Positions 22,030 through 55,845 of a DNA stretch of 64,000 bases are shown here, piece by piece. Position 1 is the first letter of the stretch; each line of letters begins with the position of its first letter. The DNA comes from Macrostomum lignano. Its lineage: Eukaryota. A program made the position numbers and the translations under genes. The stretch lies in the NCBI GenBank assembly GCA_002269645.1, contig NIVC01000065.1, positions 124,001 through 188,000 on the forward strand. Direction: 5' to 3'. The notes beneath the pieces are model-generated. The model saw only the letters and a program-made list of their open reading frames with translations. It was not told the DNA's origin and ran no database searches.

Positions 22030-22764
22030 ATGAGACTATTAATCCTAATTGTACTGATCGCGCAGATCACCTGTCAATCGCATGATTCCTACAAACAAAT
22101 CGAAGGATTTCTGTGCATCAAAAGTAACTACGTTAAAACCTTTCCTGGCCAAAAGTCCAAGATTGTTTGCGCTGCTCTGTGCAACCGCGACCCGAGCTGT
22201 CAGGCGTTCAGCCTGGCTGACGGTCCGTGCCAGCTGTTCGTGTTCGACAAGTGCAGCAAGTCGGTGAGGGACTGCGGCTGCTCCAGGAGAGGCCAGCTGT
22301 TCTTGAAGCAGCAGCCCGGACTCGAGCTGGGCGCGCTGTGTCCGTCTAACTACGAAGACGACCTGTGCGGAGTGAAGTACAAGGTGCACTTCGGAATTGG
22401 ACCATGGAGACATGGCAAACAGAAGTGCGAGTCGGAGGGCGGTCTGGTGATCATGGCCGATGTGATGGACGCCACCGAGATGAGCCACGTAGACTATATT
22501 AACGGTGTGCGCAGCCCGTCGCAGCCCTTCTTCCTCGGAGGATTTCAGCCCGCCGGAAGCGTTGAGCCCGCCGGAGGCTGGTACTGGGAAGTCTGCAACA
22601 TTACCCTGGACGGCTGGATAGTCTGGGCCTTCAGAGAGCCTGACAACGGCGGAAACGAAAATGTCGTGGCTCGCTATCCAGGGAAAAACAAGCTGGTCGA
22701 CATCAGCGAAAACAGTTATTTGCTTTCCGCGGTGCTGTGCGAGTGCCTGTCGCCATTCAATTGA
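22030..22764 (+). CDS. Secreted PAN/Apple + C-type lectin domain protein, paralog B (244 aa, intronless, EPD motif)
   Basis: Signal peptide MRLLILIVLIAQITC; CAALCNRDPSCQAF; FFLGG, WYW, WAFREPDN, AVLCEC. Clear paralog of 17075-17830. Confidence 0.87.
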   Translation: MRLLILIVLIAQITCQSHDSYKQIEGFLCIKSNYVKTFPGQKSKIVCAALCNRDPSCQAFSLADGPCQLFVFDKCSKSVRDCGCSRRGQLFLKQQPGLELGALCPSNYEDDLCGVKYKVHFGIGPWRHGKQKCESEGGLVIMADVMDATEMSHVDYINGVRSPSQPFFLGGFQPAGSVEPAGGWYWEVCNITLDGWIVWAFREPDNGGNENVVARYPGKNKLVDISENSYLLSAVLCECLSPFN

Positions 22765-24432: not shown

Positions 24433-25655
24433 ATGGCAAGCAATTGCAAGCAGCTGTTCTTCTTGGCAGTTCTGGCCGTAGGCATCTCCGCCGCCGTCTG
24501 CGACATGGGCTCTGAGGATGGCGGTGAGCACTATTGAGGCATTACATGTAGTTCGCATCGGCGTCGTTTAAAAGTCTGAGGACAATTGTTGTTACAGACA
24601 TCCTTTGCTCTGTAACTACATGTATTGGTAATTGGTGGTCAATGGCTTTGTTGGTCAATATTAGTATTAGCTTAGCTACTTTCAGATTTTTACCTAATCT
24701 TCAAGCTTCCCCATTTAGCAATGTGGAAGTTCGACGGCGTTAACAATTGCCCATTCTCCTGCACCTTCCCAGCAGTGATGGCCATGCCCTTCTCTACGGT
24801 TGCGACCGTTCGCAACCAGCTGTTGAACTATGTGAACGCGCGCCAGATCTCAGCCCCGGCTAATGTGTTCTGCAGCAACTGCCTCATCAGGGCCTGGAGT
24901 CGCCGGAACAAGTCCAACAGGATGATTAGCTTCCACATCAACAACCTGAACTCCGCTATCCAGCCCTACCCGAAAGTGGTGCAGGACAAGCTGAGGGCTC
25001 TGGCATTCGCCGCCACCACCAGCTTTGAGAACTTCAAGTAACTAACATTCTTCGATCATTTTTATTATTAATATTACCGATATTGGATATGCAAAGAAAG
25101 GCCAATCGCTGAAGGTTAAGCAAATTTGGCCCTGGTTAGTACTTGGTTGAATAGGTTTTTGCTTGTTCCTTAAAACAGCAAGTTTTCACTGTCTCTGTGG
25201 TGAATTTAGCAATCTGTGCAGTTCCAGTGGCTGTTGTACCGTTGACTTCCACTCCTGGTTACCTGGTCCAAGTGTTTACAAGATAGAAATTATAGCTCGT
25301 ACCCAATGAAAGTTACTCAAAAGTACTGTTTGTCCCATTTCTTTGGGTTAATTTTAGCGTCGAGATCCAGAACTCCTACGCTGTCAAGACGGCCTACATC
25401 GGAGCTGCCCGAAAAGTCAACAACATCGTCGACGTTGCCATCCTGGACGTGGACATTGCGGCTAGCCTGGTGCAGAAGTACATCACATTGAGCAGGCGAG
25501 AGTGCAAGAAGACCCTGTTCTGGAAGAAGTGCAAGACTGTTTACTGGAACGAGCCGAGGGGCTATTACGCTAACGAGATCAACGGCATGGTCACCATGCT
25601 GCAGCACGAGGCCTTCAAGATGTTCAAGGAGATCGTCATGTCCATGTCGGGCTAA
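24433..25655 (+). CDS. Uncharacterised secreted protein, paralog A (3 exons, 216 aa)
   Basis: Exons 24433-24523, 24776-25037 (alternative AG gives start 24773), 25358-25655; GT-AG with phases 1 and 2; signal peptide MASNCKQLFFLAVLAVGISAAVC; exon structure identical in paralog B; TATA box at 24337. Confidence 0.85.
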
Positions 25656-25972
25656 TAAGCTATAAGGACTCCATATGAGAAATCTACAGAGATAATGGGA
25701 TGTTGTGTTGGACCCTGCCAAGTCTTACATTCAAATATAATGCACGGCAGTTGAGATACTGCGGTTCGTGTATCGTCGAGTTTGAATAGTGAACCAAGAA
25801 GGCAAACTGCAATAACTTAAGCAAATTTGCAAGAGTTTTGATTTTAACTTTCTACAATACTTCTGTATGGTTTGCTTCCATGTCAAATACTTTTGTCAAT
25901 AAGTCATGCGCTCGCGAATATGGGACAGGTTATTTGAATTATAACAATTAATTTTAATACTCTCGCATTTAT

Positions 25973-26485: not shown

Positions 26486-28491
26486 TTTTTTGGTTCAGTC
26501 TTTTTTGCCGTTTGGCTTTAGTTTCATGTGCATTCGGAAATTATGATAGCGTTTTACTACTTATCAGTATCCACCATTACTCGTAATTACATCCAAAGGA
26601 CTATTCCGCTAAAGTGCCTACAAATGGGCATGAAGAACTCGTCCTTTATTTTTCAGCGCGTGATGGAGAGCATTTTAAAAAGTGCTTGTCCGAAAAGAAT
26701 GTCACAATCAACGAGAACAAATGCGTCGAGGAGTGCTATGAGGTATCTTTCCTTGGATTCCAAATCTCCGCTACGGGTATCCGACCCGACGCCTAGCTGG
26801 TAGAAAAGATCACACGCATTGCTGCAACGCAGAACAAGAAGGAGCTCGTGCAGTTCCTCCAGGCCGCTACATCAGCTTCAAGCCAGGCCGCTACATCAGC
26901 TTCAAGCCAGGCCGCTACATCAGCTTCAAGCCAGGCCGCTACATCAGCTTCAAGCCAGGCCGCTACATCAGCTTCAAGCCAGGCCGCTACATCAGCTTCA
27001 AGCCAGGCCGCTACATCAGCTTCAAGCCAGGCCGCTACATCAGCTTCAAGCCAGGCCGCTACATCAGCTTCAAGCCAGGCCGCTACATCAGCTTCAAGCC
27101 AGGCCGCTACATCAGCTTCAAGCCAGGCCGCTACATCAGCTTCAAGCCAGGCCGCTACATCAGCTTCAAGCCAGGCCGCTACATCAGCTTCAAGCCAGGC
27201 CGCTACATCAGCTTCAAGCCAGGCCGCTACATCAGCTTCAAGCCAGGCCGCTACATCAGCTTCAAGCCAGGCCGCTACATCAGCTTCAAGCCAGGCCGCT
27301 ACATCAGCTTCAAGCCAGGCCGCTACATCAGCTTCAAGCCAGGCCGCTACATCAGCTTCAAGCCAGGCCGCTACATCAGCTTCAAGCCAGGCCGCTACAT
27401 CAGCTTCAAGCCAGGCCGCTACATCAGCTTCAAGCCAGGCCGCTACATCAGCTTCAAGCCAGGCCGCTACATCAGCTTCAAGCCAGGCCGCTACATCAGC
27501 TTCAAGCCAGGCCGCTACATCAGCTTCAAGCCAGGCCGCTACATCAGCTTCAAGCCAGGCCGCTACATCAGCTTCAAGCCAGGCCGCTACATCAGCTTCA
27601 AGAGAGGCCGCTACATCAGCTTCAAGCCAGGCCGCTACATCAGCTTCAAGCCAGGCCGCTACATCAGCTTCAAGCCAGGCCGCTACATCAGTTTCAAACC
27701 AGGCCGCTACATCAGTTTTAAACCAGGCCGCACTCAATGCTTGGAATGCCAAGATTATTAAAGCCGATTTCATCTCATACTTGCAAAGGATCCTCTTACA
27801 TCATCGCATCTCTTCCACATCCCAGGGCAAAAGTCCCACTGAACTGGTATTTGGCAGACAGCTGCGAGTTCCAGTCGCACTCACAATATGAGCAAGGATG
27901 TACCAACCGATCAGCTCGAAACTTCCCAGCCAGGTGGATTTCCTGATGAACCAAGGCCGCAACACCGCTTGAATTGGGTCCTCGACGGTGAATCGCTACG
28001 CCTAGCAAGCACCAACCAGCTTGCCCCATACGAATTACAGGATGAGGATGATGCTGAAAATGCCCCGGCCGCTGACGTCGAGCCACATCATGGACCGGAG
28101 AACGAGACCGCTGCCGGTGATCCACAGGATCCAGAGCCAGTTGGGATTGCGCAACAACTGCGACGTAGCAACCGCCAGAAGTGAGCCCCCTGAGCCCCCT
28201 GACGCTTGCCTGATTCCTGAAGGCGCTCAAGCACTGTGCGAATGTGTTTTAAAGACTTTTAAAGACGACACTCTCCCCAATGCCATACCACAACCCTTCC
28301 CTTTGATGAGTTCTTATTGTTGTCCTTTAGCATATCTTATATCTTGTAATTCACAGCCTTGCTAACAAAGGGTGCATGTTGTAGCCGTAATCAGACTACG
28401 AGCTGCGATTTTTTGGTTCAGTGTATTTTGTCTTTTGGCTTATGTTTTATGTGCGTTCCGAATTTATGCAGCGTTCTACTACTTATCAGTA
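26486..28491 (+). mobile_element. Internally deleted, degenerate Ty3/gypsy LTR retrotransposon
   Basis: RT fragments LQMGMKNSSFIFQRVME and INENKC..VSFLGFQISATGIRPD..KKELVQFL; integrase C-terminal part HHRISSTSQGKSPTELVFGRQLR; tail LRRSNRQK; diverged ~83-bp direct repeats at 26486-26569 and 28409-28491 (probable LTR remnants). Confidence 0.8.
26858..27730 (+). repeat. Near-perfect 21-bp tandem array (~41 copies) inside the gypsy remnant
   Basis: Unit CAGGCCGCTACATCAGCTTCAAGC-type; only one internal variant (27601) and two degenerate terminal units. Confidence 0.97.
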
Positions 28492-29367
28492 GCAAGTAAG
28501 TAAAGTAGCTCTATTTATTCCTACCAAGTTTCTATTTACAGCATATGAATTGACAACTATATATTGCTAACGGACTAACTATTAGTTAAACAATTCTTAA
28601 CCGTCGCCTCCGAAGCAACGAGATTTACCGACCATATTACGTACATATATATTAAATAGAATTATGATCACCAAATGAGTAATGTTCTGTCCATTACCGA
28701 AATCGTTTTCGATTGATAGAATAATTTTTAACAGTAAAATTACTGCATGCTCAATTTCATTAAAGCAGATCTACCTTACTCTGTACTTTGAGGCAAATTA
28801 GTTTGGTAAGGCACGATTAGGCGAAATGTAGTGAAGATACTGCATAGCACTGAAACTTCATGGTTGCTTTCTGTCATGCAAGCTGCATACGAACTTTCAA
28901 CTCGTCTACAGTCGACTAAACACCATGGTTGTCTTATAGATGAACCCCCCCCCAAGTTGAGCTAGTTAAACTCTGACAGAATCAAATACCACTTGTGGTA
29001 GCCATATCATGCCAGTTCAACGTGTTACGCGATTCAAATTCTAATTACAAGAATTAGCTGCTAATTTACAAACGCTGGAAAAAAGTTTTCTTACTCACTT
29101 GACAGCTCCGTTGGCTCGATTCCCACGCAGAAATCGTGTAAATTTGCCACCTGCAGCCGACTGGGAGATAGCGGAGTCGGCAGCCTGGCTGTCGCTTTGT
29201 CAGACAACTGTTGGCCGAATAGGCATTCGATTCCGCTGGGCCCTTTGTTCCTGCAACCGAACTGCGGCCGCTTATCGACTATATATAAATGCCAACTTCA
29301 CTGCAAGCTGAGACAACGCAGCAGACTTTCTGAAAATTCGGCTAATAGCACCCTAGAAACAGTCATT

Positions 29368-30454
29368 ATGGCAAGCAATTGCAAGCAGCTTTTCTTCCTG
29401 GCAGTTCTGGCCGTAGGCATCTGCGCCGCCGTCTGCGACACGGGCTCTGAGGATGGCGGTGAGCACTTTTCAGGCTTGGCTTTGAGCAGAGAAAGGGTTA
29501 ACTTGGGTGCTAATTTTCGATGTAACAGGGCACTGTCGATTTTGCAGACGCATCCTGCTGGTTAATCGATGGAATTAAAGTCTAACTAACTTAGGGGTTT
29601 ATTAATTTATTAGAGCTAGCCTACCTGTTCTAAGGAATGGAATCAATTAGAAACTATCATGAATCTTCCCAACAGTGATGGCCATGCCCTTCTCTACCGC
29701 CGCGACCGTCCGCAACCAGCTGTTGACCTATGTGAACGCGCGCCAGATCTCAGCCCCCGCTAATGTGTTCTGCAGCAACTGCCTCATCAGGGCCTGGAGT
29801 CGCCGGAACAAGTCCAACAGGATGATTAGCTTCCACATCAACAACCTGAACTCTGCTATCCAGCCCTACCCGAAAGTGGTGCAGGACAAGCTGAGGGCTC
29901 TGGCGTTCGCTGCCACCACCAGCTTTGAGAACTTCAAGTAACTACATTGATTGCCTTAATTTACTAGTACGAACGATTACTGAGTTGTGTTGCTCAGAGA
30001 ATGAAGGAAGATTTTCTGTTTATTATGCATTAGGAGCAATGCGTCAGGACTGGGTTGACTGTTCACTGACGACGTATATTCGAAATTTTAACATGCCCGT
30101 TAGAGACTTTGAGACTTGTCTTTAAACTATCCTAATACGCCCACACCAAATCCTAGCGTCCAAGTCCAGAACTCCTACGCCGTCAAGACCGCCTACATCG
30201 GAGCTGCCCGAAAAGTCAACAACATCGTCGACGTTGCCATCCTGGATACGAACATTGTGGCTGCCCTGGTGCCAAAGTACATCACCATGAGCAGGCGACA
30301 GTGCAAGAAGATCCTGTTCTGGAAGAAGTGCAAAACTGTTTATTTCAACGTGCTGAGGGGCTATTACGCTAACGAGATCAACGGCATGGTCACCATGTTG
30401 CAGCACGAGGCCTTCAAGATGTTCAAGGAGATCGTCATGTCTATGCCGGCTTAA
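29368..30454 (+). CDS. Uncharacterised secreted protein, paralog B (3 exons, 216 aa)
   Basis: Exons 29368-29458, 29676-29937, 30157-30454 have the same lengths (91/262/298 nt) as paralog A; introns are diverged while exons are conserved and in frame. Confidence 0.86.
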
Positions 30455-33199: not shown

Positions 33200-35371
33200 G
33201 TGCAGAAGGATTTGAACACCGACACAGACACAAAAGCGGAGTCAATTTTCATCGCAGTGTGTCTTCAGCAAATTCCTTCGTCACACAGGCAACACTTCCT
33301 TGTTGTTCTCGTCCTTTGACTTTTGTCTCGCGCATGTTGCACAGCGCTTTCTGCCACCAACTGACACCACAGCCGCCGCTTCACGTGCCTGTTCCTTCAT
33401 TTGTTCGTCGTTGATTTGACAACCTGCAAGCTGGATCATCAGCCGGTGATGATTGGACCGATTCTGAAGAAGAGCGGCCGATTGCGGGCGCTCCTCGATC
33501 AGAGGTTGCAGAAGTTGCGCAGCTGCCTTGCGCTGGAACTCGTTGGGATATTTCGGCGAGGGGCAGAGCTCCGGGTGCGCCAGTCTCCACATAGCAGCGG
33601 CATTCACAGCTGCTATGTTTAATACGCCGCCGGAGAAGATTGCCTTCTCGCATGAGCGGGACTTTCGCTTGCAGTCGGATGTGCGGAACATCCTGTTGCA
33701 GGTGTTCGTGCCACTCTTGGTAGAATTGTAGTACGTGCCTATTGCTACAGACTTGCCATTGGGAAGCAATTGTCTGTCGTGGTGCATGGTGGACAGCAAC
33801 ATCACGTTTCGGCCCGCCTTGGGGCAGTAGGACACACACGTGAGTTCCTCAGAAAACCGGAATTCGCTCGTGTGTGGAGCCATGGTTTTAGTTGAATTCT
33901 CGAGATCGGCTGGTAGGCCACCACGGGTGCGCATCTCTGTTCCAAAAACTGGGAATCCCATTTCTCGGTACAAGTGATTGGCCAGCGCAGGACTCGAGAA
34001 GAATCTGTCACATGTGATGTTGTGTCCTCTGAATGGATCAGCAAAGCGGCAAACGACTTGCTCACCACTCCACACCTCTGAGCCCTTCGGCTCCAAGCAT
34101 CAAATCCCTGTGATGCAAAAGTAGTGGACAGCAGTGTCCTTTGCCAGTGCAGATTTCCGCATTGAACACATAGCGGATGTCCATGTCATTCTGAATCTCT
34201 GGATTCCCAGCCGATGTCAGCAGGAACAGCTTGGCACCATTGCGACGGGCTTCTCCTTCAGAAAGACCGTGAAGTCACAGTTCACACCCCAGTATAGACA
34301 ACCAGAGTTTCGTCGACGCAGAGGTAGGCCCAAAAAGGACAGGATGGCGCAGCTGAATGACAAAGGTGTCGGATGCCGTAGAATTAGTCCGTTGTGGCAG
34401 TCCGCTGACGATGTTCGGCAGTTTCGAATTTTACATCATGCCGGACCATTGTATAACATGCAGACATGCCTGGTCTGGTGTCTTGATAGAAAAATCACGA
34501 TATTGGGGGTGCCAGCTCGTCGGGGCCGCGTGGTGGCACTCCGTTGAAGGTCCCGAAGGTCGTCCAGACAGAGCTGAATGCTGAACATGAAACAGGACCA
34601 TTGTATAATATGCAGACATGCCTGGTGTGGTGCCTTGATAGAAAAATCACGATGTTGGTGGTGCCAGCTCGTCGGCCGCGCGGTGGCACTCCGTTGAAGG
34701 TCCCGAAGGTCGTCCAGACAGAGCTGAATGCTGAACATGAAGCAGGACCATTGTATAATATGCAGACATGCCTGGTTTGGTGCCTTGATAGAAAAATCAC
34801 GATGTTGGTGGTGCCAGCTCGTCGGGGCCGCGTGGTGGCACTCCGTTGAAGGTCCCGAAGGTCGCCTGTAAGTCTACAGGTCAGCCTAGAGGGTCGCCAT
34901 CGTCCATTTCATTTACCAATTATGTCTACTGTCTGGATGCTGCATGCAGAAGAGGATTCTTCCATTTCAGTTTTGGGAACGCAGCCGTCTCTGAGATGCC
35001 GATCGGGTGCTTTTGTTGAAGGTCCCGACGGTCACCGCCGATGCTCCAGACGGTGATGAAGGGGACCTGGTGCCTGGGATGCTGAGAGCAGAGGCCTCTA
35101 CGACAGATGGACCCAGATTATTGAGCCAATATGGGTTATACAGTGTAGTGTTGGTTGCCCTTGCCACCAGTGTCTTCGACAAGAATCGTTGAATATCTCG
35201 ACGATGCTGACGTCGGATGACTTTGAAAGTTAGTTTGTCGGAAAGGGCGAAAAATTTGGATCCATATGGTCGACTTCTACGAAAATCGGTAATTCTGTTG
35301 GCGAGCTATCGTGAAATTTGAAATACACACTCCGTGGTCTTTCCCCATGGGGAAAAATACGTGGACTTTAA
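33200..35371 (-). mobile_element. Degenerate piggyBac-like (PGBD4-type DDE) transposon
   Basis: Frameshifted YLCVDETL (first Asp), NITCDRFFSS (second Asp), YNSTKSGTNTCN (third Asp changed to Asn), C-terminal Cys-rich RKRCATC..CCLC. TTAA at 35368-35371 may mark the 5' end. Confidence 0.85.
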
Positions 35372-35427: not shown

Positions 35428-35708
35428 CTGCCCTAATGGGCCAGATGTGCAACCGACAGCTCAGCCGCAGCTATTGCGCGGCGCATCTGAAGGCTGCGTA
35501 CGGCTGTTCAGTCCAAGGACTGGGGTGTCGCCACACACCCTCAATTATCCCAGCTAATGCTGGCACCCATTTTACAGCTGGGTGAACTGAAGCAATGCAG
35601 AGTTAAATGTCCTGCTCAAGGACACAAATTGTTACTGTGGGATCGGGAATCGAACCTCCGACCTTCAGATCGTAAGTCCGACGCTCTTAACCACTAGGCC
35701 ACAATCCC
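35428..35708 (-). mobile_element. Near full-length tRNA-derived SINE with CORE-like central domain and (ATT/GTT)n tail
   Basis: Minus strand: A box TGGCCTAGTGG (35701-35691), B box GGTTCGATTCC (35656-35646), CORE-like TGTGTCCTTGAGCAGGACATTTAAC..CAGCTGTAAATGGG, microsatellite tail at 35372-35420. Confidence 0.8.
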
Positions 35709-36951: not shown

Positions 36952-38300
36952 CTATGACTGATTAGAAGAAGCGATGACGTCATCATCTCCAGATTCCTCT
37001 GGACAGGAGACTCCGTAGGCGGCTGCGCAGTTGCCCATTTTTGTCCTCAGCGCGTCGATGTCATCCTCGCGGTGCAGGCCAGAGTTCAGCGCCGCCTCGC
37101 AGGTGTCTCTCACTTGCGACCAAGTCGCCCCCGAGCGCACCTGACAGTCGATCAGCTGGCACCAGAGCTGCACAGAGTAGGGGCAGCTGGACAGCGCGGT
37201 GCGGTACAGCGGCAGCAGCTGGCTGGCTTGCACGCCTCCCGTGAGTTCCTGCGGATGAGAATTTGCTGCCTATTAGAGCTGGGATGTGTAGTCTGGGCTT
37301 TACGTGTAACTTGGAGCTTGGTAACTTGGGGTAACTTCGAGTCTTTTGAATTTGAATCGGCGCCATTTTTTCGACTGGGTTTTTACGGCTTTAGCACCCG
37401 GGCGGCTTTAGCACCAGGGGCTTTAGCGCCACGCTTTAGCGCCAAGGGGCTTTAGCGCCAAGGGGCTTTAGCGCCAAGGGGCTTTAGCGCCAAGGGGCTT
37501 TAGCGCCAAGGGGCTTTAGCACCAGGGGCTTTAGCACCAAGGGGCTTTAGCAGCAGGGAATTTAGCACCAGGATCTTCAGCGCCAAGGGGCTTTAGCACC
37601 AAGGGGCTTTAGCAGCAGGGAATTTAGCACCAGGGGCTTTTGCGCCAAGGGGCTTTAGCACCAAGGGGCTTTAGCAGCAGGGGCTTTAGCACCAGGGGCT
37701 TTAGCACCAGGGGCTTTAGCACCAGGGGCTTTAGCACCAGGGGCTTTAGCACCAGGGGATTTAGCACCAGGGGATTTAGCAGCAGGGGCTTTAGCAGCAG
37801 GGGCTTTAGCAGCAGGGGCTTTAGCACCAGGGGCTTTAGCACCAGGGGCTTTAGCACCAGGGGCTTTAGCACCAGGGGCTTTACCACCAGGGGCGCCAGC
37901 ACCAGGGGCGCCAGAACCAGGGGCGCCAGCACCAGGGGCGCCAGCACCAGGGGCACCAGCACCAGGGGCGCCAGCACCAGGGGCACCAGCACCAGGGGCG
38001 CCAGCACCAGGGGCGCCAGCACCAGGGGCGCCAGCACCAGGGGCGCCAGCACCAGGGGCGCCAGCGCCAGAGATACCTGGTACCTAGACAAAAAATCATT
38101 AAACTCACCATTTCCGTCAGAGCCTCAGCCCAGACCGAGCTGGGCATGGAATGGCTGGCATTATTTGACAGCACCTGCTGATATTCTCGCCAATGGCTGC
38201 CCGCACACGAGGCCGCAGCGGCTGGTGCCGGTGCCTCTGCTCTTGCTGCAGTTGCTATGGTCAAATATTCTCCACTGTCCGAGTTGGGCTGTGCAGTCAT
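36952..38300 (-). CDS. Short HAT (half-a-TPR) repeat protein resembling the SART3/Prp24 HAT region (2 exons, 162 aa if ATG 38300 is used); possibly a gene fragment
   Basis: Exons 38300-38109 (donor GTGAGT) and 37248-36952 (acceptor CCGCAG), phase 0. LYRTALSSCPYSVQLW..VRDTCEAALNSGL resembles the SART3 segment RAIRNCPWTVALW..FEKALNAGF (from memory). A further acceptor lies at 38324. Confidence 0.6.
37385..38070. repeat. Bipartite 15-bp minisatellite in the HAT-gene intron
   Basis: GCACCAGGGGCTTTA block followed by GCACCAGGGGCGCCA block. Confidence 0.93.
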
Positions 38301-38394
38301 GGAGGTCGTGTCTGAATGCGTCCCTAGAAACAAATATTTTTTTTTCGGAAATGGAAGGAAAGGTATTTTTTCTATGGAAATTTATAGACATGTG

Positions 38395-38920
38395 GCCCTG
38401 ATCCCAATTATCCCATTGGGAGAATCATCCCACATCCGAATCTGTATCCCTGATCCCAATTATCCCATTGGGAGAATCATCTCACACCGGAATCTGTATC
38501 CCTGATCCTAGTTATCCCAATGGGAGAATCATCTCACACCCGAATTTGTATTCCTGATCTCAGTTATCTCAATGGGAGAATCATTCCACACTTGAATCTG
38601 TATCCCTGATCTCAATTATCCCAATGGGAGATTCATCCCACACCCGAATCTGTATCCCTGATCCCAGTTATTCCATTGGGAGAATCATCCCACATCTGAA
38701 TCTGTACCCCTGATCCCAGTTATCTCATTGGGAGAATCATCCCACATCTGAATCTGTACCCCTGATCCCAGTTATCCCAATGGCAGAATCATCCCACACT
38801 TGAATCTGTATCCCTGATCTCAATTATCCCAATGGCAGAATCATCCCACACTTGAATCTATACTCCTGATCCCAGTTATCCTCTAGGGTGAATTATCCCA
38901 TAATCGAATCTGTATCCCGG
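38395..38920. repeat. 52-bp minisatellite
   Basis: Unit TATCCCAATGGGAGAATCATCCCACACCCGAATCTGTATCCCTGATCCCAGT, about 10 copies. Confidence 0.92.
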
Positions 38921-45909: not shown

Positions 45910-48900
45910 ATGTCTGCTTCAGTGGGAGAGTTTCTGCAACAAATTCGACAGTTGTTGAACAAAGACGCCGATTTCGGGCAGCAATGCAGCACGTCCGAGG
46001 ATCTTTGTCGGCTGCTGGCTGACGGCGAGGATCTCTGCTGTCTTCTTAGCGTCCTTAGCAACGGCCGGATATCGCCGGAAGGAGACGGAACCGTGTCGTT
46101 CTATTCGATGAATTCCGAGATGTTTGGTAGGAGGAATGTGAAATTTTTTCTGTCCAAATGCGTCCATGAGTTCCAGATGAAGCGGGAGGACCTGTTTGAG
46201 GCGGAGGACCTGCTGCTGCTGCGGAGGCCCGACAGGGTGCTCACTGGCCTGCGGAGGCTGCTGTCGCTGCAGGGACTGGTGAGGCGGCGGGGACTCTCAT
46301 CTACCCTGTCTACTCCCCTTCTACCCTGCGTCTATTCCCTGCCTACCCTGCGTCTATTCCCTGCCTACCCCTGTGTCTATTCCCCATCTACTCTGTGTCT
46401 ATTCCCCATATACCCCTGTGTCTATTCCCCATATACCCCTGTGTCTATTCCACATCTACCCCTGTGTCTATTCCCCATCTACTCTGTGTCTATTCCCCAT
46501 CTACTCTGTGTCTATTCCTCATATACCCCTGTGTCTATTCCCCATCTACCCTGTATCTATTCTCCATCTACCCTGTGTCTACTCCCCATCTACCCAGTGT
46601 ATATTCCTTATCTACCCAGTGTCTATTCCCCATCTAACCTAAGTCTATTCCCCATCTAACCTAAGTCTATTCCCCATCTACCCAGTGTCTATTCCCCATC
46701 TAACCTAAGTCTATTCCCCATCTACCCAGTGTCTATTCCCCATCTACCCCTGTGTCTATTTCGCATCTTCTTCCTCGCCGAAGGCGTTGCGCCTTGATTG
46801 CCAGCGAATGTCATGTTATCTTACCTTCTACATAACAACATTTATCATTTACTAATTAAAACAGCCAAATCCGGCCAACGAGCGGATGCCATCAGTGGCA
46901 TCTTTAGACTACCAGCCGTTGAGCTGCGCCTCTCGCAGGCAATCGGATTTCATCTACTCGGAGCCGGAGACTCCAGCAGCCGCCGCCTCAACTCCTGCCG
47001 CCCAACTGGAGAACATCGTCTCGGAGATCTGTCATCTTCAAGCTCAGCTGGTTGATCGCCTGTCGCTACTATTGAAATTCCACGGGGAACTTCGCGGTCC
47101 CCTGTCAGAGTGGAGCTCCGACCTACTGGACTCGACGTTCAAGCACACGGAGCATCTGCTTCAGGTGCACGAGTATTTCAAGCAGCAACTAGACAGCCTC
47201 GCCGAGTCGAAATCCGCTGCCAATTTCTGCACAAATCTTGGCTCGATGTTTCTCCAAGTGAAGCCCAGACTGTCGGCAGTCTACTCCAAGTACTACCCGG
47301 ACTACCCTCTGGCCAAGGCCAAGATGGAGGAGGCCTTCCAGCAGCAGCCGCAGTTGCGACGCCAACTGGAACTGCTGGAGCGGCACTTCAACGCGGAGTC
47401 CTTTAGCATCTTGTACGACTCTCCGTCCAAGCAGATGTTCAACTATCAGATACTGTTCGAGAGGCTGCACAGAACGGCTGAAAAAGAGTTGGCGACGATC
47501 TCTGAACAAGCGGCTAATTCGGTGAGGATACAGTACGGTTGCTGTCGTAGCTTAACCCGTCCGAATCAGAGTAGCAGTGCCGCTGAACATCCTGTGATAG
47601 TGGGTCCGTTGGGAATCCCTTGCAAAGTCTTTACCGGAATCTCCCCCTTAAAACCATTGAATCATCTCCGGAATCCCCAAAAACTAGAGAATTATCTCGG
47701 GAATTTTTTAGACCCATAGAATCGTCTCTGGAATCTTCTAAAACCAGGAGAATTATCTCGGGAATCTTCCAAAACCAGAGAATCATCTCTGGAATCTTCT
47801 AGAACTATAGAATCTTCTCGGGTATCTCCTAGACCCATAGAATCAATCACCTTGGGAATCTCCTAGAAACATAGAATCATCTCTGGAATCTTCTAAAACC
47901 AGGAGAATTATCTCGGGAATCTTCTAAAACCAGGAGAATTATCTCGGGAATCTTCTAAAACCAGGAGAATTATCTCGGGAATCTTCTAAAACCAGGAGAA
48001 TTATCTCGGGAATCTTCTAAAACCAGGAGAATTATCTCGGGAATCTTCCAAAACCAGAGAATCATCTCTGGGATCTTCTAGAACTATAGAATCATCTCGG
48101 AAATCTTCTCAAACCATAGAATCATCTCGGAAATCTTCTCAAACCATAGAATCATCTCGGACCCGCCCTCTCCTTCAACCGCAGGTGGAACTTGCTGTGG
48201 TGGAGTGCCGCCGCCTGCTCAGCCACCTGAACGAGCGCAAGCGCTACTCGGAGCAGGAAGCGGCTACTAGGCAGATTCTGCAGTCAATCGAAGGCCTACC
48301 AGAGCATCTTACTAAGCTGGAGAATGTCGGCCTGCACAGAGGCGATGGTCAGTTCCGAGCTACACTGGGCAAGGAGCAGCGAGCGTTGGTGCAGAAAGAG
48401 TGCTTCTGCCTGCTGACCGACCGGCAGCTCATTGTGGCCACGCCTGCGGCATCCTCGAACGGTTCGTCCCAGCAGCCCTGGGCATTTCTATTCGACGTTT
48501 CGCTGTACGAAAACGATCTTCAACTGGAGTGCAGAGCCGGTGAGCCGGGCGGCCTCCAGCTGAAGCAGTCAGGCAAGGGGCTGGTGCGGTTTAGCCGTCC
48601 GGGAGCCAAGAAGCTGTCGGCTGGTGTCGGCGCCAGCCTGTGGACTCAGCTGCTGGAGGTGCGCGCGGCCAACCTGCCAGACGGCTGGAACAGCGGCGGG
48701 CACCGGTTTCGACGGGTCACCTTTGAGGAGGGCAGCGAGTGCTCCCGGTGCCGGGAGACCTTTGCCGGGCTGTACTTTCAGGTGAGCTGGGCGGTCTGGG
48801 AGGTCTGAAGGTCTGGTGAGTCTGGTAGAGCAACTGAGGGTCTGGGAGGTTCGCCCAGAAACTGACACTCTGGGAGGCTGGCCCAGCAACTGACACTCTG

Positions 48901-51900
48901 GGAGGCTGGCCCAGCAACTGAGGATCTAGGAGGCTGGTCCAGCAACTGAGGATCTTGGAGGCTGGCCCAGCAACTGAGGGTCTGGGAGGTTGGCCCAGCA
49001 ACTGAGGGTCTGGGAGGCTGGCCCAGCAACTGAGGATCTGGGAGGCTGGCCAAGAAACTGACACTCTGGGAGGCTGGCCCAGCAACTGAGGATCTGGGAG
49101 GCTGGTCCAGCAACTGAGGATCTGGGAGGCTGGCCCAGCAACTGGGGATCAGGGAGGCTGGCCCAGTTACTTACTGAGACAGCAGCTACGATAGTGTAGC
49201 ACTGATCTGGCGTTACACAAACTAATATCCAATTATGAACTGATTTGCTGCCATAAACCCGACCAAACTGTATGGATAATCGTTTATTTGCAAAATTCCT
49301 TTCTATTAAAACTGTCACGGGTCTAAATAACTCGTAGTAAGAGACTGAAAAGCGTTTAAAGGTCTAAAAAACAAGCACAATATTCGCGATGCTTTCAATC
49401 GTCATCACGCTTGATGCAGTCCAATTCGGCTGCTCATCAAATTCGGATGCAGAGCGGCTGTGACGCAGCGAAGTCACAGCTGCCAAATTCCGAAGCAGGC
49501 CATTGGGTGGAAGACGCTGGTGCACCTCTTGTACAGCTGGAATCGCGTGGCCCTGAGCTGATCGTCCAGGCGCGGCTGCTCCGGCTGCGGCATCTGCGTG
49601 GCCGCGGGACTGGCCGAGCTGGGCTGCGGAAATGTTTGAGGAGAAATGAAGTGAAGATTTTTATTGAACCAGGGGTTTTAGCACCAGGGGTTTTAGCACC
49701 AGGGGCTTTAGCACTAGGGGTTTTAGCACTAGGGGTTTTAGCACCAGGGGTTTTAGCAACAGGGGTTTTAGCACTAGGGGTTTTAGCACCAGGGGCTTTA
49801 GCACCAGGGGCTTTAGCACCAGGGGGCGCCAGCACCAGGGGGCGCCAGCACCAGGGGCGCCAGCACCAGGGGGCGCCAGCACCAGGGGGCGCCAGCACCA
49901 GGGGCGCCAGCACCAGGGGGCGCCAGCACCAGGGGGCGCCAGCACCAGGGGGCGCCAGCACCAGGGGGCACCAGCACCAGGGGGCGCCAGCACCAGGGGG
50001 CTCCAGCAACAGGGGCGCCAGCACCAGGGGCGCCAGCACCAGGGGGCTCCAGCACCAGGGGGCGCCAGCACCAGGGGGCGCCAGCACCAGGGGGCGCCAG
50101 CACCAGGGGGCGCCAGCACCAGGGGCACCAGCACCAGGGGGCGCCAGCACCAGGGGGCTCCAGCAACAGGGGGCGCCAGCACCAGGGGCGCCAGCACCAG
50201 GGGGCTCCAGCACCAGGGGGCGCCAGGACCAAGGGGCGCCAGCACCAGGGGCGCCAGGACCAAGGGGCGCCAGCACCAGGGGGCGCCAGCACCAAGGGGC
50301 GCCAGCAACAGGGGGCGCCAGCACCAGAGGATTTAGCACCAAGGGACGCCAGCAGTTCCCTTTGCAAAAACCAACAAGAGCCAGTAGTCCCCAGCAACTA
50401 AACTGCAGCCTCAAAGGCAGCTTACCGGGCACTCGATGATCCGCCAGCTGGCAGGGCGGCAGCCCGCTGCTGAGCAGCCGCAGTCAGGCAGACCAGCAGC
50501 ATCGCAGCCTGCAGTTTCCTGAAGTTCATGGCTTTCTTCCGCTACGGGAGAATGATGGCTGCTTTGCAAGAACTTTTTGGAGATCTTGGTGCGGAAAAAT
50601 TGCTTCTGACCCGAGTCCATTTTATAGACTTTTCTATTCGAATCCGCCTTCAGAAAGTTGCCGCTCTTTGCCTGTTTTTCGACAATTATCTTTCCAAAGA
50701 AGTTCCGTTTTAGGAAAGAAGCAATTTCGACATGCTTGGAGAGATTTGAGACCACTCACAGCAGTTTTCTATGCGAAATTGCTGGGACAAAAATTTTTCA
50801 ATTGATGGGCAAGGGCGCAGGTGATTATTTTTTCTTTTGAATCTTTTGAATGCCTTTTTCCGATTTATCAAAGACGGAAGAGAAAAAACACATCACATCA
50901 AAGCGAAATAATTACTGTGTAAAGTTGGCACAGTTTATGAATCAGAAATTTTGTCCCTTTGGTTTATCGAACCTTTAATCGGTGGGAAATTTCTTGGAGG
51001 AGAACTGCACGCTTATGAATTCACAGCAAAAGGAATCAGACAATTTTTACTTCTCACTGAACTGACATCCTGGGTACTCAATAGAGCACATGTAGTGCAT
51101 CCAAGAAGGAGGTTTAAGTGGCCCAAGAACTGAGGATCTGGGAGGCTAGTGGCCCAGCAACTGAGGGTCTGGGAGGCTGGCCCAGCAACTGGGGATCTGG
51201 GAGGCTGGCCCAGCAACTGTGGATCGGGGAGGCTGGCCCAGCAACTGTGGATCTGGGAGGCTGGCACAGCAACTGGGGATCTGGGAGGCTAGCCCAGCAA
51301 CTGGGGGATCTGGGAGGCTGGCCCAGCAACTGGGGGATCTGGGAGGCTGGCCCAGCAACTGAGGATCTGGGAGGCTGGCCCAGCAACTGGGGATCTGGGA
51401 GGCTGGCCCAGCAACTGGGGATCTGGGATGCTGGCCCAGCAACTGAGGATCTGAGAGGCTGGCCCAGCAACTGAGGATCTGGGATGCTGGCCCAGCAACT
51501 GAGGATCTGGGAGGCTGGCCCAGCAACTGGGGATCTGGGATGCTGGCCCAGCAACTGGGGATCTGGGAGGCTAGTGGCCCAGCAACTGGGCATCTGGGAG
51601 GCTAGTGGCCCAGCAACTGAGGGTCTGGGAGGCTGGTGGCCCAGCAACTGGGGATCTGGGAGGCTAGTGGCCCAGCAACTGAGGGTCTGGGAGGCTGGCC
51701 CAGCAACTGGGGATCTGGGAGGCTGGTCCAGCAACTGGGGATCTGGGAGGCTGGCCCAGCAACTGGGGATCTGGGAGGCTGGCCCAGCAACTGAGGATAT
51801 GGGAGGCTGGCCCAGCAACTGTGGATCGGGGAGGGGACCTACTAAGTTGTGACCTTGGAATTGTCTCACCCGATCAGCACCAGTTAAGAAGCACACGACA

Positions 51901-52412
51901 GCCCGCAGCTCTGATGGCGTCAATCCCAAACCAACCCAACCGCCACCAATACGCAGGGCTACCACTGCGACCACTGCAATCAGCAGCTGGACCGCACCTG
52001 CCTGACCGCCTTTCTGCGACACCGGCCGGTCTCCTACCCGTTGGGTGGCCCGGCAGACTCCGTGGCCTCCCGCTGCCAGCAACTGGTGCACGATCACCTG
52101 GACCGATGGTCAGCGGAGCGGCTACTCCGCCGGAGTCAGCCGGGCGCCTTCCTAATCAGGCAGAGCGGCGAAAAGCTCGTCCTGTCCATCCGATGGCAGC
52201 GAGCCGAGGCCTATCACGTGATCATCCAGCAGCGGGTATCGGGTTCCACTGGCAGCCAGCAGTACTCGGTAGATCCCAAGAATGGCATCTGGCACCAGAG
52301 CCTGGAACGACTGGTGACTCATCATCGGACCAACACATTAACCATCGAGAATGTGACAGGTATTTGCCTGCTGGAGCTGCTGCTGCCGTCGATTTATGAG
52401 AACTTTAATTAA
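45910..52412 (+). CDS. VAV: Vav-like protein, CH-DH(RhoGEF)-PH-C1-SH2, 692 aa, no SH3 domains
   Basis: Exons 45910-46278, 46865-47521, 48185-48781, 51957-52412, all phase 0, GT-AG. CH: FLSKCVHEFQMKREDLFEAEDL matches Vav-type FLxxCxxxFxxKRxxLFEAxDL. DH ends LNERKR. C1: HRF..CSRC..FQ|GYHCDHC. SH2: GAFLIRQS. Confidence 0.88.
46300..46760. repeat. ~21-bp minisatellite, Vav intron 1
   Basis: Unit CTATTCCCCATCTACCCTGTGT-type. Confidence 0.9.
47630..48160. repeat. ~31-bp minisatellite, Vav intron 2
   Basis: Unit AGAATTATCTCGGGAATCTTCTAAAACCAGG. Confidence 0.9.
48800..49165. repeat. 28-bp minisatellite (dispersed family), Vav intron 3, left
   Basis: Unit CTGAGGATCTGGGAGGCTGGCCCAGCAA. Confidence 0.93.
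49474..50529 (-). CDS. Putative neuropeptide precursor (82 aa), elevenin/L11-like, nested antisense in Vav intron 3
   Basis: Exon 1 50529-50426 (MNFRKLQAAMLLVCLTAAAQQRAAALPAGGSSSA, donor GTAAGC, phase 2); exon 2 49618-49474 (..RATRFQLYKR-CTSVFHPMACFGIWQL*). TATAAA at 50625-50620 and AATAAA at 49288-49283 on the minus strand. Confidence 0.72.
49667..50350. repeat. Bipartite 15/16-bp minisatellite in the neuropeptide-gene intron
   Basis: GCACCAGGGGTTTTA/GCTTTA block then GCACCAGGGG(G)CGCCA block; same family as 37385-38070. Confidence 0.93.
50620..50625 (-). promoter_or_regulatory. TATA box of the nested neuropeptide gene
   Basis: TATAAA on the minus strand about 90 nt upstream of ATG 50529. 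Confidence 0.5.
51120..51835. repeat. 28-bp minisatellite (dispersed family), Vav intron 3, right
   Basis: Unit CTGAGGATCTGGGAGGCTGGCCCAGCAA with 31-bp TAG-insertion variants. Confidence 0.93.
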
Positions 52413-55371: not shown

Positions 55372-55845
55372 GTGGCCCAGCAACTGGGGATCTGGGAGGC
55401 TGGCCCAGCAACTGAGGATCTGGGAGGGTGGTCCAGCAGCTGGGGATCTGGGAGGCTGGCCCAGCAACTGAGGATCTTGGAGGCTGGCCCAGCAACTGAG
55501 GATCTGGGAGGCTGGCCCAGCAACTGAGGATCTTGGAGGCTGGCCCAGCAACTGAGGATCTTGGAGGCTGGCCCAGCAACTGAGGATCTTGGAGGCTGGC
55601 CCAGCAACTGAGGATCTGGGAGGCTGGCCCAGCAACTGAGGATCTGGGAGGGTGGTCCAGCAACTGAGGATCTGGGAGGCTGGCCTAGCAACTGAGGATC
55701 TGGGAGGCTGGCAAGGCAACTGAGGATCTGGGAGGCTGGCCCAGCAACTGAGGATCTGGGAGGCTGGCCCAGCAACTGAGGATCTGGGAGGCTGGCCTAG
55801 CAACTGAGGATTTGGGAGGCTGGAACAGCAAGTGAGGATCTGGGA
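55372..55845. repeat. 28-bp minisatellite (dispersed family) just downstream of the HERC stop codon
   Basis: Unit CTGAGGATCTGGGAGGCTGGCCCAGCAA. Confidence 0.93.

Follow-up and report, generated by a model that had tools for sequence, protein, structure and literature searches.

Human MCH (DFDMLRCMLGRVYRPCWQV) lies at the C-terminal end of its precursor, after a dibasic site, and combines a C-x8-C ring with a short tail ending in W-Q-aliphatic. MCH is not known from protostomes. MCH-type precursors are reported from chordates, with a starfish as the first case outside them (PMC5818035). In Aplysia, elevenin directly follows the signal peptide and has a cleavage site and then a long C-terminal part behind it; placing Ala at Arg16, Asp/Asn5, the aromatic residue or Pro13 lowers its potency by up to >1000-fold, and exchange of the Arg after Cys2 for Ala raises the EC50 5- to >8000-fold (PMC10175484). 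The allatostatin-C (AstC) loop of protostomes always counts six residues, with Asn in the loop of most members, and the AstC-type precursors, which end in a single cyclic peptide behind a dibasic site, share an intron of phase 0 that lies within the proregion (PMC9048919).

Here we describe a locus in the window, the whole 64,000-nucleotide stretch of DNA that was analysed, which we interpret with moderate confidence as an unannotated, lineage-restricted orphan gene of two exons coding for an 82-residue secreted prepropeptide, located antisense in a Vav-type intron. A sequence-only reading had proposed a hidden neuropeptide gene at this place, and all the minus-strand elements that it listed are present where it had put them, in the right order and phase. 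The features of the locus and of its host are as follows.

50621–50626, minus strand: TATAAA, putative TATA box in the sequence, 97 nt 5′ of the ATG
50426–50529, minus strand: coding part of exon 1, 104 nt, ending in phase 2, M1–R35 (MNFRKLQAAMLLVCLTAAAQQRAAALPAGGSSSAR)
50529–50473, minus strand: predicted signal peptide M1–A19 (heuristic)
50420–50425, minus strand: splice donor CCG/GTAAGC (G at 50425)
49668–50327, minus strand: composite minisatellite filling the candidate intron
49619–49625, minus strand: tandem acceptor CAG-CC-CAG (CCGCAG/CCCAG/C), with exon 2 starting at 49623 (first AG) or 49618 (second AG)
49474–49618, minus strand: coding part of exon 2 via the second AG, comprising propeptide S36–Y64, KR, peptide and stop
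49530–49525, minus strand: dibasic site K65-R66
49524–49477, minus strand: predicted C-terminal peptide C67–L82
49476–49474, minus strand: stop codon of the 82-aa frame
49283–49473, minus strand: putative 3′UTR, GC 0.414, closing with AATAAA at 49288–49283
46886–47719: neighbouring host exon, RhoGEF (Pfam match)
48185–48781, plus strand: Vav-type exon of the host gene with PH and the first C1 half, closing with CAG/GTGAGC
51985–52412 (start approximate), plus strand: following exon of the host gene with the second C1 half (...QGYHCDHCNQQLDRTC...) and then SH2 (Pfam match)
48829–49166, no strand: 28-mer minisatellite array on one flank of the candidate
51119–51834, no strand: further array belonging to this 28-mer minisatellite family, on the other flank

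The RhoGEF and SH2 Pfam matches fall on the plus strand, one on either side of the candidate, and the second half of the Vav C1 domain picks up at ~51985 in the same frame as the SH2 exon. The C1 domain is thus split across the intron, and the nesting that had been claimed is real: the two-exon candidate occupies, in antisense orientation and between minisatellite arrays, a Vav-type intron of ~3.2 kb. A HECT exon elsewhere in the window found its best named matches in trematodes at 50–51% identity, level with mollusc and annelid, which suggests that the window comes from a spiralian, possibly a flatworm.

The distance of the TATA box from the start codon resembled that in neighbouring small genes (−84 and −104), and no ATG intervened between the expected transcription start, ~30 nt 3′ of the TATA box, and position 50529, where an in-frame TAG upstream is followed by its first in-frame ATG, with a G at −3. 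The signal peptide, called by a crude heuristic and not by SignalP, consists of the n-region MNFRK (+2), a 12-residue h-region AAMLLVCLTAAA with a mean Kyte-Doolittle value of 2.36, and an AAA/QQ cleavage motif. The donor has the sequence GTAAG, the other canonical donor form, compared to GTGAG in 7 of the 7 unambiguous donors of trusted exons in the window, the donor and acceptor sets being taken from inspection of ORF ends. Most of the intron is occupied by a 16-mer (AGCACCAGGGGGCGCC, 34.5 copies, 49785–50327) and a 15-mer (ACCAGGGGTTTTAGC, 10.5 copies, 49668–49825); a coding function of this minisatellite was ruled out because its periods of 16 and 15–16 nt are no multiple of 3 and rotate the frame. 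A second two-exon unit, at ~37400–38090, has its gap filled by this composite repeat too. The unique sequence of the candidate is single-copy in the window, and the candidate is therefore not part of a repeat family. Splicing to the second AG yields a product of 82 aa ending in ...FQLYKR-CTSVFHPMACFGIWQL-stop, with the AATAAA 186 nt 3′ of the stop. After removal of the signal peptide, this product retains exactly two cysteines (67 and 76) and one internal dibasic site (K65-R66), and the precursor has the generic features of a secreted prohormone: an N-terminal signal peptide (by the heuristic), a flanking dibasic convertase site and an even number of cysteines.

Coding statistics favoured a real gene in this frame. 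The codon log-odds of the 82-aa CDS amounted to 0.32 bits per codon, compared to 0.35±0.11 for trusted exons of the window and −0.12±0.24 for open non-genic windows, 4.8% of which reached the candidate's value. The proposed frame ranked first of three in both exons, and in exon 1 the signal-peptide frame was ahead of the next open frame by 8 bits. GC3 in exon 2 was 43/50 in the proposed frame (p=0.001) and 28/49 and 26/49 in the other frames; exon 1 by itself showed no GC3 periodicity. The GC content was 0.654 in exon 1, with 0.454 upstream and 0.51 downstream, and 0.655 in exon 2, with 0.39 before and 0.41 after, and these steps coincided with all four edges of the CDS: ATG, donor, acceptor and stop. 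The window holds 35 non-repeat GC-rich islands, most of them exons of recognisable genes, and both candidate exons are among them. Roughly a quarter of these islands are not obviously exons.

A real gene at this locus is therefore likely but unproven, and three alternatives have to be set against the 82-residue precursor. On the first, which we regard as unlikely, the locus would hold no functional gene: TATA and AATAAA hexamers, GT/AG sites, a signal-peptide-like ORF and a KR-Cys-loop tail would have come together by chance in the unique, GC-rich DNA that separates the minisatellites, and the locus would have been noticed through looking for neuropeptide-like strings. Each element is individually common, with ~17 signal-peptide-like ATG ORFs and ~3.4 dibasic-Cys-loop-stop tails expected by chance per simulated window, and the real window contains 10 further such tails that are clearly meaningless. 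Short-motif likeness also comes easily, as illustrated by the best PDB match, a GPCR transmembrane segment at 10.8 bits; zero homologues were found, the gene model is drawn from the sequence itself, and the GC islands without an obvious exon count in the same direction. Against a chance origin, a generic prepropeptide model (an ATG exon that begins like a signal peptide and closes with a GTRAG donor, then a phase-compatible AG within 3 kb followed by [KR][KR]-C-x4-12-C-x0-8-stop) occurred once in the window, at the candidate locus; 40 simulations with a third-order Markov model produced it 0 times. The exon-like codon usage, the first rank of the chosen frame in each exon, the GC3 periodicity of exon 2 and the GC steps exactly at the CDS edges point the same way, and coding properties had played no part in the original choice of the locus. 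Together with the simulations, they make the hidden two-exon precursor proposed by the sequence-only reading plausible.

The main weakness of the gene model is its dependence on the second AG. The two AGs, downstream of the polypyrimidine tract CTTCACTTCATTTCTCCTC, are 5 nt apart, and the 82-aa frame needs the second, as had been cautioned beforehand; the first AG indeed gives 96 aa and no motif. Both AGs precede C, whereas the 13 likely real acceptors of the window precede G (10) or A (3). The gene may be real with its intron spliced mainly to 49623. Its product would then be a secreted protein of 96 aa that has a tail rich in Arg, Ser and Pro (…ARPARPVPRPRRCRSRSS…CIRI) but lacks the cyclic peptide, or else the transcript would be non-productive, leaving the KR-C-x8-C frame as a by-product or minor isoform. 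Scanning for the 3′ splice site ordinarily picks the first AG 3′ of the branch point and polypyrimidine tract, which here would shift the frame of the product; that AG lies in a CCGCAG context as at three real acceptors in the window (TTCCGCAG, matching those of Vav exon 3, Vav exon 4 and a small gene), and yUnAy-like branch-point candidates (TTCAC, TTCAT) at ~24–29 nt upstream are at a normal distance that implies no steric exclusion. This outcome nevertheless appears rather improbable: AGs only 5 nt apart can compete, and in exon 2 the frame opened by the first AG reaches −6.27 log2P per codon, less than the real-exon 5th percentile of −5.97, with a GC3 of 28/49, compared to −5.75 log2P per codon and a GC3 of 43/50 in the peptide frame, and the whole 96-aa CDS has a non-coding-like codon log-odds of 0.02. 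A non-secreted protein of 114 aa could also be read from an ATG at 50620 in another frame of the same GC-rich exon, using the same donor in phase 0 and the first AG and ending in the same C-terminal sequence. Its agreement with the conventionally preferred AG notwithstanding, we consider this model extremely unlikely, as its ATG stands 1 nt after TATAAA and hence upstream of any TATA-directed start site, its additional 91 nt have a GC content of 0.48 and, at −5.95 log2P per codon, stand at the real-exon 5th percentile, its GC-rich part scores 8 bits below the signal-peptide frame, and it has neither a signal peptide nor a Pfam match.

For the preferred 82-residue precursor, family membership was assessed against 38 distinct published elevenins, with which the elevenin sequences quoted in the earlier reading agreed. 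The two cysteines of the candidate are 8 residues apart (C67-x8-C76), as in 38/38 elevenins, and stop-free C-x8-C strings arose by chance 132 times in the six-frame translation of the window. With an in-register elevenin matrix the candidate reached −26.9 bits, rank 49 of these 132, compared to +24 to +47 for true members; with a gapped elevenin profile (HMM) it reached 2.4 bits (E=14, rank 31 of ~2260), compared to 38.6 bits for the positive control. The best gapped pairwise score was 42, with two indels and to Platynereis PDCTRFVFHPSCRGVAA only, and true members reach at least 67 with each other. This score tops all 124 chance C-x8-C strings (maximum 39), and shuffles with fixed cysteines attain it in 0.6%, a figure inflated because the candidate had been selected for its likeness to elevenin.

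A divergent flatworm orthologue of elevenin/L11, with the ring slipped by one residue and the precursor rearranged to carry the peptide at its C-terminus, would share with the elevenin/L11/SNET-1 (ELVP-1) peptides the C-x8-C ring and the C-F-G-I step, in which the Gly two residues after Cys2 is found in 38/38 elevenins and is followed by V, I or L in 27/38. It would further share the Thr after Cys1 with the Aplysia and Platynereis elevenins, and the pairwise score to Platynereis, above that of chance strings, adds to this. Flatworm neuropeptides are, moreover, often very divergent. We nevertheless hold such orthology to be very unlikely. Cys2 is followed by Phe instead of the Arg (36/38) or Leu (2) of elevenins, and in front of Cys1 stands the K-R cleavage site instead of Asp/Asn (36/38) and an aliphatic residue, so that the predicted mature peptide would begin at Cys; loop position 5 is His, compared to an aromatic residue in 37/38, and loop position 7 is Met, compared to Pro in 32/38, and these are the positions at which Ala lowers the potency of Aplysia elevenin (PMC10175484). 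The F and P of the candidate loop each come one position too early for the elevenin register, and none of the 38 elevenins has an indel in the ring. Finally, the candidate peptide constitutes residues 67–82 of 82, after a 46-residue spacer and KR, at the precursor end opposite to that of the Aplysia peptide, which adjoins the signal peptide. The earlier elevenin/L11-like assignment was thus not borne out by the scores, the key residues or the position in the precursor. Of the signature on which it was built, the 8-residue loop and the C-x-G-[VI] tail hold and the register of VFHP does not; the elements of the shared pattern CT..VFHP..C are present, but their spacing differs, as Platynereis has CT-2-VFHP-1-C and the candidate CT-1-VFHP-2-C. 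The echo of allatostatin-C that had also been heard (FHPMACF and FNPISCF) is a real but weak likeness. A divergent member of the allatostatin-C/somatostatin type, its ring enlarged from 6 to 8 residues, would account for the C-terminal layout of KR, a 16-mer and a stop, for the FxP (F-H-P) inside the loop, a motif of many, mainly ecdysozoan, AstCs, and for the Phe directly after Cys2, as in the arthropod form CYFNPISCF. Scored with an arthropod AstC matrix, the ring end SVFHPMACF ranks among the best 0.17% of the strings in the window. Membership in that family is likewise very unlikely. All 20 published AstCs examined have the fixed six-residue loop, compared to 8 residues here, where His takes the place of the usual Asn, and they have one residue after Cys2, compared to six. 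The candidate scored 4.6 bits with the arthropod matrix, where true members reach at least 20, and −1.8 with the matrix of lophotrochozoan forms (C-[LM]-[VF]-N-[IV]-[IV]-[SA]-C-[YWF]), those which a spiralian should carry, where members reach at least 14.6. Its sole intron is in phase 2, unlike the phase 0 AstC proregion intron (exon 1 extends 104 nt from the ATG), and the loop TSVFHPMA contains no W or K, so that the WK motif is missing and the somatostatin/urotensin-like (SSRP-like) group is excluded. On these comparisons no known family, elevenin included, can be named for the peptide.

Database searches returned no relatives. Both splice products were absent from ~15 billion proteins by exact look-up, a word-indexed homology search with the precursor gave no match at E≤10, and exhaustive phmmer against 1.84 billion representatives gave 0 matches to the candidate. 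Two metagenome scans, one with back-translated peptide patterns and one with a VFHPMACFG DNA pattern, detected no relatives; Pfam at E≤10 yielded nothing relevant for all three product models, and the peptide string, searched literally, appeared in none of 8.3 million papers. These negatives are weak because the 198-aa host Vav exon likewise found no match in the same word-indexed search, the lineage not being represented in the databases. The elevenin papers retrieved for flatworms/Platyhelminthes had titles on other taxa or were general reviews, and their consulted passages mention no flatworm elevenin; the disulfide, cysteine and cpp-1 passages of the planarian prohormone catalogue (PMC2953531) describe no cysteine-loop peptide. 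A GPCR fragment, suggested by the PDB search, was considered and rejected; the upstream sequence is hydrophilic. Rfam reported only one tRNA in the window.

For the orphan two-exon gene that we favour, the sequence elements, the coding statistics and the nesting were observed directly; we infer as follows how it would be transcribed, spliced to the second AG and processed, and what it would do. Transcription would start ~30 nt 3′ of the TATA box, splicing would join the GTAAGC donor to the second AG (49618) across the ~0.8 kb minisatellite-filled intron, and translation would begin at the first ATG (50529). The precursor would enter the ER co-translationally and its signal peptide would be cut after Ala19, which would also take out Cys14 and leave exactly two cysteines. 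Cys67 and Cys76 could then form a disulfide, and a subtilisin-like prohormone convertase could cut after the only internal dibasic site, K65-R66, to release a hydrophobic, non-amidated 16-mer, cyclo(1-10)-CTSVFHPMACFGIWQL, with an oxidised monoisotopic mass of 1836.815. One junction and one peptide of 1836.8 Da make the locus a concrete and cheap target. If real, the gene would extend the poorly known peptide repertoire of a non-model spiralian by an orphan secreted peptide with a cysteine loop. It would also exemplify the short genes that escape ORF-based annotation, its 82-codon frame being split by a minisatellite-filled intron. It is quite unlikely, though conceivable, that in a flatworm-like spiralian the peptide serves a receptor of the elevenin or AstC/somatostatin type as an extremely derived ligand, its ring changed in register or size and its precursor rearranged; this would place an ancient bilaterian signalling system in a phylum for which we found no published ligand, and would show what extent of drift such ligands can undergo with the C-x8-C...G-[VI] scaffold kept. 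The candidate has no bearing at present on any long-standing question. It does carry a caution: a visually convincing match (CT-VFHP-C-G-[VI]) failed both in-register and profile scoring, and family names should therefore not be given to such peptides on sight.

Compared with other genes nested antisense in introns of animals, the candidate would have the same layout, a small independent transcription unit that carries a TATA box and a poly(A) signal of its own, and is unremarkable among them; the arrangement is common and by itself carries no functional implication. Its apparent similarity to human MCH lies in the C-terminal peptide after a dibasic site, the C-x8-C ring and the W-Q-aliphatic end of the tail, and it extends to none of the ring residues (MLGRVYRP in MCH, TSVFHPMA here). 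With AstC/somatostatin-type precursors the candidate shares a short length, a signal peptide, a spacer, a dibasic site and a single C-terminal disulfide-looped peptide. Because the precursors of somatostatin, allatostatin-C and MCH-type hormones are built in this way, a role as a signalling peptide is, by analogy, the most likely one for the candidate.

The candidate, a putative two-exon gene on the minus strand (50529 to 49474), is most likely explained, with a little more than even confidence, as an orphan gene for a small secreted prepropeptide. The elements listed by an earlier sequence-only reading (TATAAA, ATG, donor, repeat-filled intron, KR-loop tail, stop and AATAAA) were all present in that order at accurate coordinates (splice borders are marked by a slash):

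50626-50621, minus strand: TATAAA, putative TATA box
50529, minus strand: ATG, the first in-frame ATG past an in-frame TAG, with G at -3
104 nt, minus strand: exon-1 coding segment MNFRKLQAAMLLVCLTAAAQQRAAALPAGGSSSAR, ending in phase 2 at the CCG/GTAAGC donor
~0.8 kb, minus strand: intron, almost wholly composite minisatellite
minus strand: acceptor region, a polypyrimidine tract followed by CCGCAG/CCCAG/C and the second coding segment
186 nt past the stop, minus strand: AATAAA, putative poly(A) signal

No ATG lies between the expected transcription start and 50529, and the TATA-to-ATG spacing is 97 nt, compared with 84 and 104 nt in neighbouring small genes. Use of the second AG (exon start 49618) yields an 82-residue product with the C-terminus ...RATRFQLYKR-CTSVFHPMACFGIWQL-stop, and use of the first AG (49623) a product of 96 residues whose tail is rich in Arg, Ser and Pro; the earlier caveat that the motif-bearing product arises only through the second of the tandem AGs was accurate. 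Cleavage by a convertase at K65-R66 would yield a 16-mer, disulfide-looped and non-amidated, with a predicted oxidised mass of 1836.815.

Coding potential was scored with a table of 2,512 codons from trusted exons of the window (HERC4-like, TOG-domain and Vav genes). The 82-residue CDS reached a log-odds of 0.32 bits per codon, compared with 0.35 ± 0.11 for trusted exon chunks and −0.12 ± 0.24 for stop-free windows elsewhere, 4.8% of which reach the candidate. The proposed frame was the best of three in both exons: the signal-peptide frame of exon 1 scored 8 bits above the sole other open frame, and the peptide frame of exon 2 showed GC3 of 43/50 (binomial p=0.001), compared with 28/49 and 26/49 for the two alternatives. 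GC content stepped at all four CDS boundaries, on the 5′ side from leader (0.45) to exon 1 (0.65) to intron start (0.51), and on the 3′ side from intron end (0.39) to exon 2 (0.655) to 3′UTR (0.41). Both exons were among 35 non-repeat GC-rich islands, most of which are exons of recognisable genes, and the locus is single-copy within the window. A chance constellation would draw on ingredients that are individually common (~17 signal-peptide-like ORFs and ~3.4 Cys-loop tails per simulated window), but the generic two-exon prepropeptide model, which occurs once in the window, at the candidate, was found in 0 of 40 Markov-simulated windows. Because exon-like codon usage, GC3 periodicity and GC steps played no part in the original choice of the locus, they provide independent support for a gene; we consider chance rather unlikely and the candidate probably a real protein-coding gene.

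The choice of splice site is the weakest link of the 82-residue model, in which we infer use of the second AG. General splicing rules favour the first AG: its TTCCGCAG context is similar to that of real acceptors at Vav exon 3, Vav exon 4 and a small gene at 37250, and putative branch points lie ~24-29 nt upstream of it, so that on such rules it would be preferred. The 13 likely real acceptors of the window carry YnCAG with G (10) or A (3), never C, as the next base, and both candidate AGs precede C; all 7 unambiguous donors read GTGAG, the candidate GTAAGC being the other canonical form. However, the first AG joined to the signal-peptide exon gives a frame at −6.27 log2P per codon, below the 5th percentile of real exons, and a 96-residue CDS with a codon log-odds of 0.02 rather than 0.32 bits per codon, making a real gene spliced mainly at the first AG distinctly improbable. 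A 114-residue alternative from ATG 50620, using the same donor in phase 0, would allow the first AG to lead into the peptide frame, but this ATG is just 1 nt past TATAAA, the additional AT-rich 5′ part scores at the 5th percentile and the signal peptide is lost, leaving this alternative barely credible. The two best-supported frames join only through the second AG. The 82-residue model is coherent.

The plus strand bears a Vav-type gene with Pfam RhoGEF (46886-47719) and SH2 (52041-52412) domains, and its C1 zinc finger is divided as follows:

48185-48781, plus strand: Vav-type exon, terminating within the first half of C1 at CAG/GTGAGC
from ~51985, plus strand: second half of C1 (…QGYHCDHCNQQLDRTC…), in frame with SH2

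Since the C1 halves and SH2 are split around the candidate, it lies antisense within a ~3.2 kb Vav-type intron, which bears out the nesting proposed earlier. In translation, the conserved zinc-binding His of C-x2-C-x4-H-x2-C (~51985-52040, plus strand) is apparently Asp (CDHCNQQLDRTC), and this C1 domain may be degenerate. An array of one 28-mer minisatellite flanks the candidate on either side; this family (TGGCCCAGCAACTGRGGATCTGGGAGGC) forms three arrays (48829-49166, 51119-51834 and 55373-55845) in introns of two different genes. Tandem repeats account for 37.5% of the window, and most of them are minisatellites in introns, with 14-64 nt periods. In the neighbouring HERC4-like gene, the conserved HECT exon has at most 54% identity to anything, with trematodes, mussel and annelids tied at ~50-51%; by this similarity the lineage would be spiralian, possibly flatworm.

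A second small two-exon-looking unit occupies 36952-38400 on the minus strand:

~38385, minus strand: TATAAA
~38302, minus strand: ATG
~38108, minus strand: GTGAGT donor
~37250, minus strand: acceptor, ATCCGCAG/
36952, minus strand: TAG stop

Its exon 2 encodes HAT/TPR-like sequence (LLPLYRTALSSCPYSVQLWCQLIDCQVRSG), and its gap carries the composite minisatellite also seen in the candidate intron, with GGTGCTGGCGCCCCT units preceding GGTGCTAAAGCCCCT units and order and orientation unchanged, which suggests a dispersed repeat family settling in introns. Elsewhere, an ORF at 29197-29565 (plus), whose start resembles a signal peptide (MASNCKQLFFLAVLAVGICAAVC), lies on a GC island at 29381-29497; the sequence around it is duplicated, giving paralogous segments (~24.4-25.7 and ~29.3-30.4 kb) with near-identical ORFs (24721-25041 and ~29661-29806, plus; 25317-25721 and 30122-30406, minus); these segments may represent another small secreted-protein gene pair. 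Paralogous intron-less genes at 17075-17830 and 22030-22764 (both plus) encode ~245-residue Cys-rich secreted proteins with long identical blocks (…CQAFSLADGPCQLFVFDKCSKSVRDCGCSRRG…), the latter gene giving no Pfam match and no exact protein match. The sole Rfam match in the window is a tRNA gene (35638-35708, minus; 44.2 bits). ORFs 26528-28365 and 33281-34096 look like TE remnants, with integrase/RT-like and transposase-like fragments by appearance, one of them broken by a long repeat of 24-nt period (26793-27891).

No relatives of the candidate were found by exact protein look-up of its products, indexed homology search of the precursor, exhaustive phmmer over 1.84 billion representatives, two metagenome scans or a literal literature search for the peptide string, and Pfam returned nothing at E≤10. 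The 198-residue host Vav exon likewise matched nothing among 5.8 billion clustered proteins, and we therefore do not count missing relatives against the gene. The best PDB match of the peptide was a GPCR transmembrane segment at 10.8 bits, indicating that resemblances of such size arise easily.

The sequence-only reading had named the candidate a hidden elevenin/L11-like neuropeptide gene, and the elevenins it cited agree with a published set of 38 distinct peptides (Supplementary Table 1 of Fu et al. 2023, PMC10175484). The set varies little around [VLI]-[DN]-C-x-x-[FY]-x-[FY]-x-P-x-C-R-G-[VI…], and none of its rings has an indel. Matches of the candidate in register are confined to the two Cys, Thr at loop 1, Ala at loop 8, Gly at +2 and Ile at +3. 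It scored −26.9 bits with the in-register matrix, ranking 49 of 132 chance C-x8-C strings (true elevenins, +24 to +47 bits), and 2.4 bits with a gapped profile HMM (E=14, rank 31 of ~2,260 fragments; Platynereis-like control, 38.6 bits). In favour of elevenin homology, the best pairwise gapped score, 42 against Platynereis, is higher than that of any of the 124 chance strings (maximum 39), and only 0.6% of Cys-fixed shuffles attain it; the locus, however, was picked for exactly such resemblance, and true members score much higher (at least 67, median 86). The proposed shared pattern CT..VFHP..C.G[VI] holds for C-x8-C, Thr, Gly and Ile, but VFHP is one residue out of register relative to Platynereis, and its alignment needs a ring deletion plus a compensating insertion. 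The candidate lacks Arg16, Pro13, Asp5 and Phe11, whose Ala substitution was most harmful to receptor activation in Aplysia elevenin, and its peptide forms the precursor C-terminus, whereas the Aplysia peptide directly follows the signal peptide (PMC10175484). With matrix, profile HMM, key residues and precursor position all against it, we do not file the candidate as an elevenin, and homology is very unlikely.

Allatostatin-C (AstC)/somatostatin-type precursors resemble the candidate in layout, with a dibasic site preceding one cyclic peptide at the C-terminus, and the echo of AstC noted earlier is real but weak at the ring end (F-H-P-M-A-C-F, compared with arthropod F-N-P-I-S-C-F). Scored against 20 published AstCs (PMC8786951, Supplementary Table 3), the candidate fell in the top 0.17% of window strings with the arthropod matrix, yet at 4.6 bits versus at least 20 for members, and at −1.8 versus at least 14.6 for members with the lophotrochozoan matrix, whose forms are expected in a spiralian. 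Koch et al. 2022 (PMC9048919) describe a six-residue loop without exception in protostome AstCs, Asn within it in most members, and a proregion intron in phase 0 common to the genes. The candidate loop counts 8 residues, with His where Asn would stand, and its intron is in phase 2. Homology to AstC is very unlikely. The somatostatin/urotensin-like group was excluded, as the candidate has no WK motif. Melanin-concentrating hormone (MCH) shares with the candidate its ring size, C-terminal position and W-Q-aliphatic end, but zero matching ring residues. In one review (PMC5818035), MCH-type precursors are reported for chordates, with a starfish as the first non-chordate case. Judged from its sequence, the candidate, though not demonstrably in any known family, appears to be built like a C-terminal cyclic-peptide hormone precursor.
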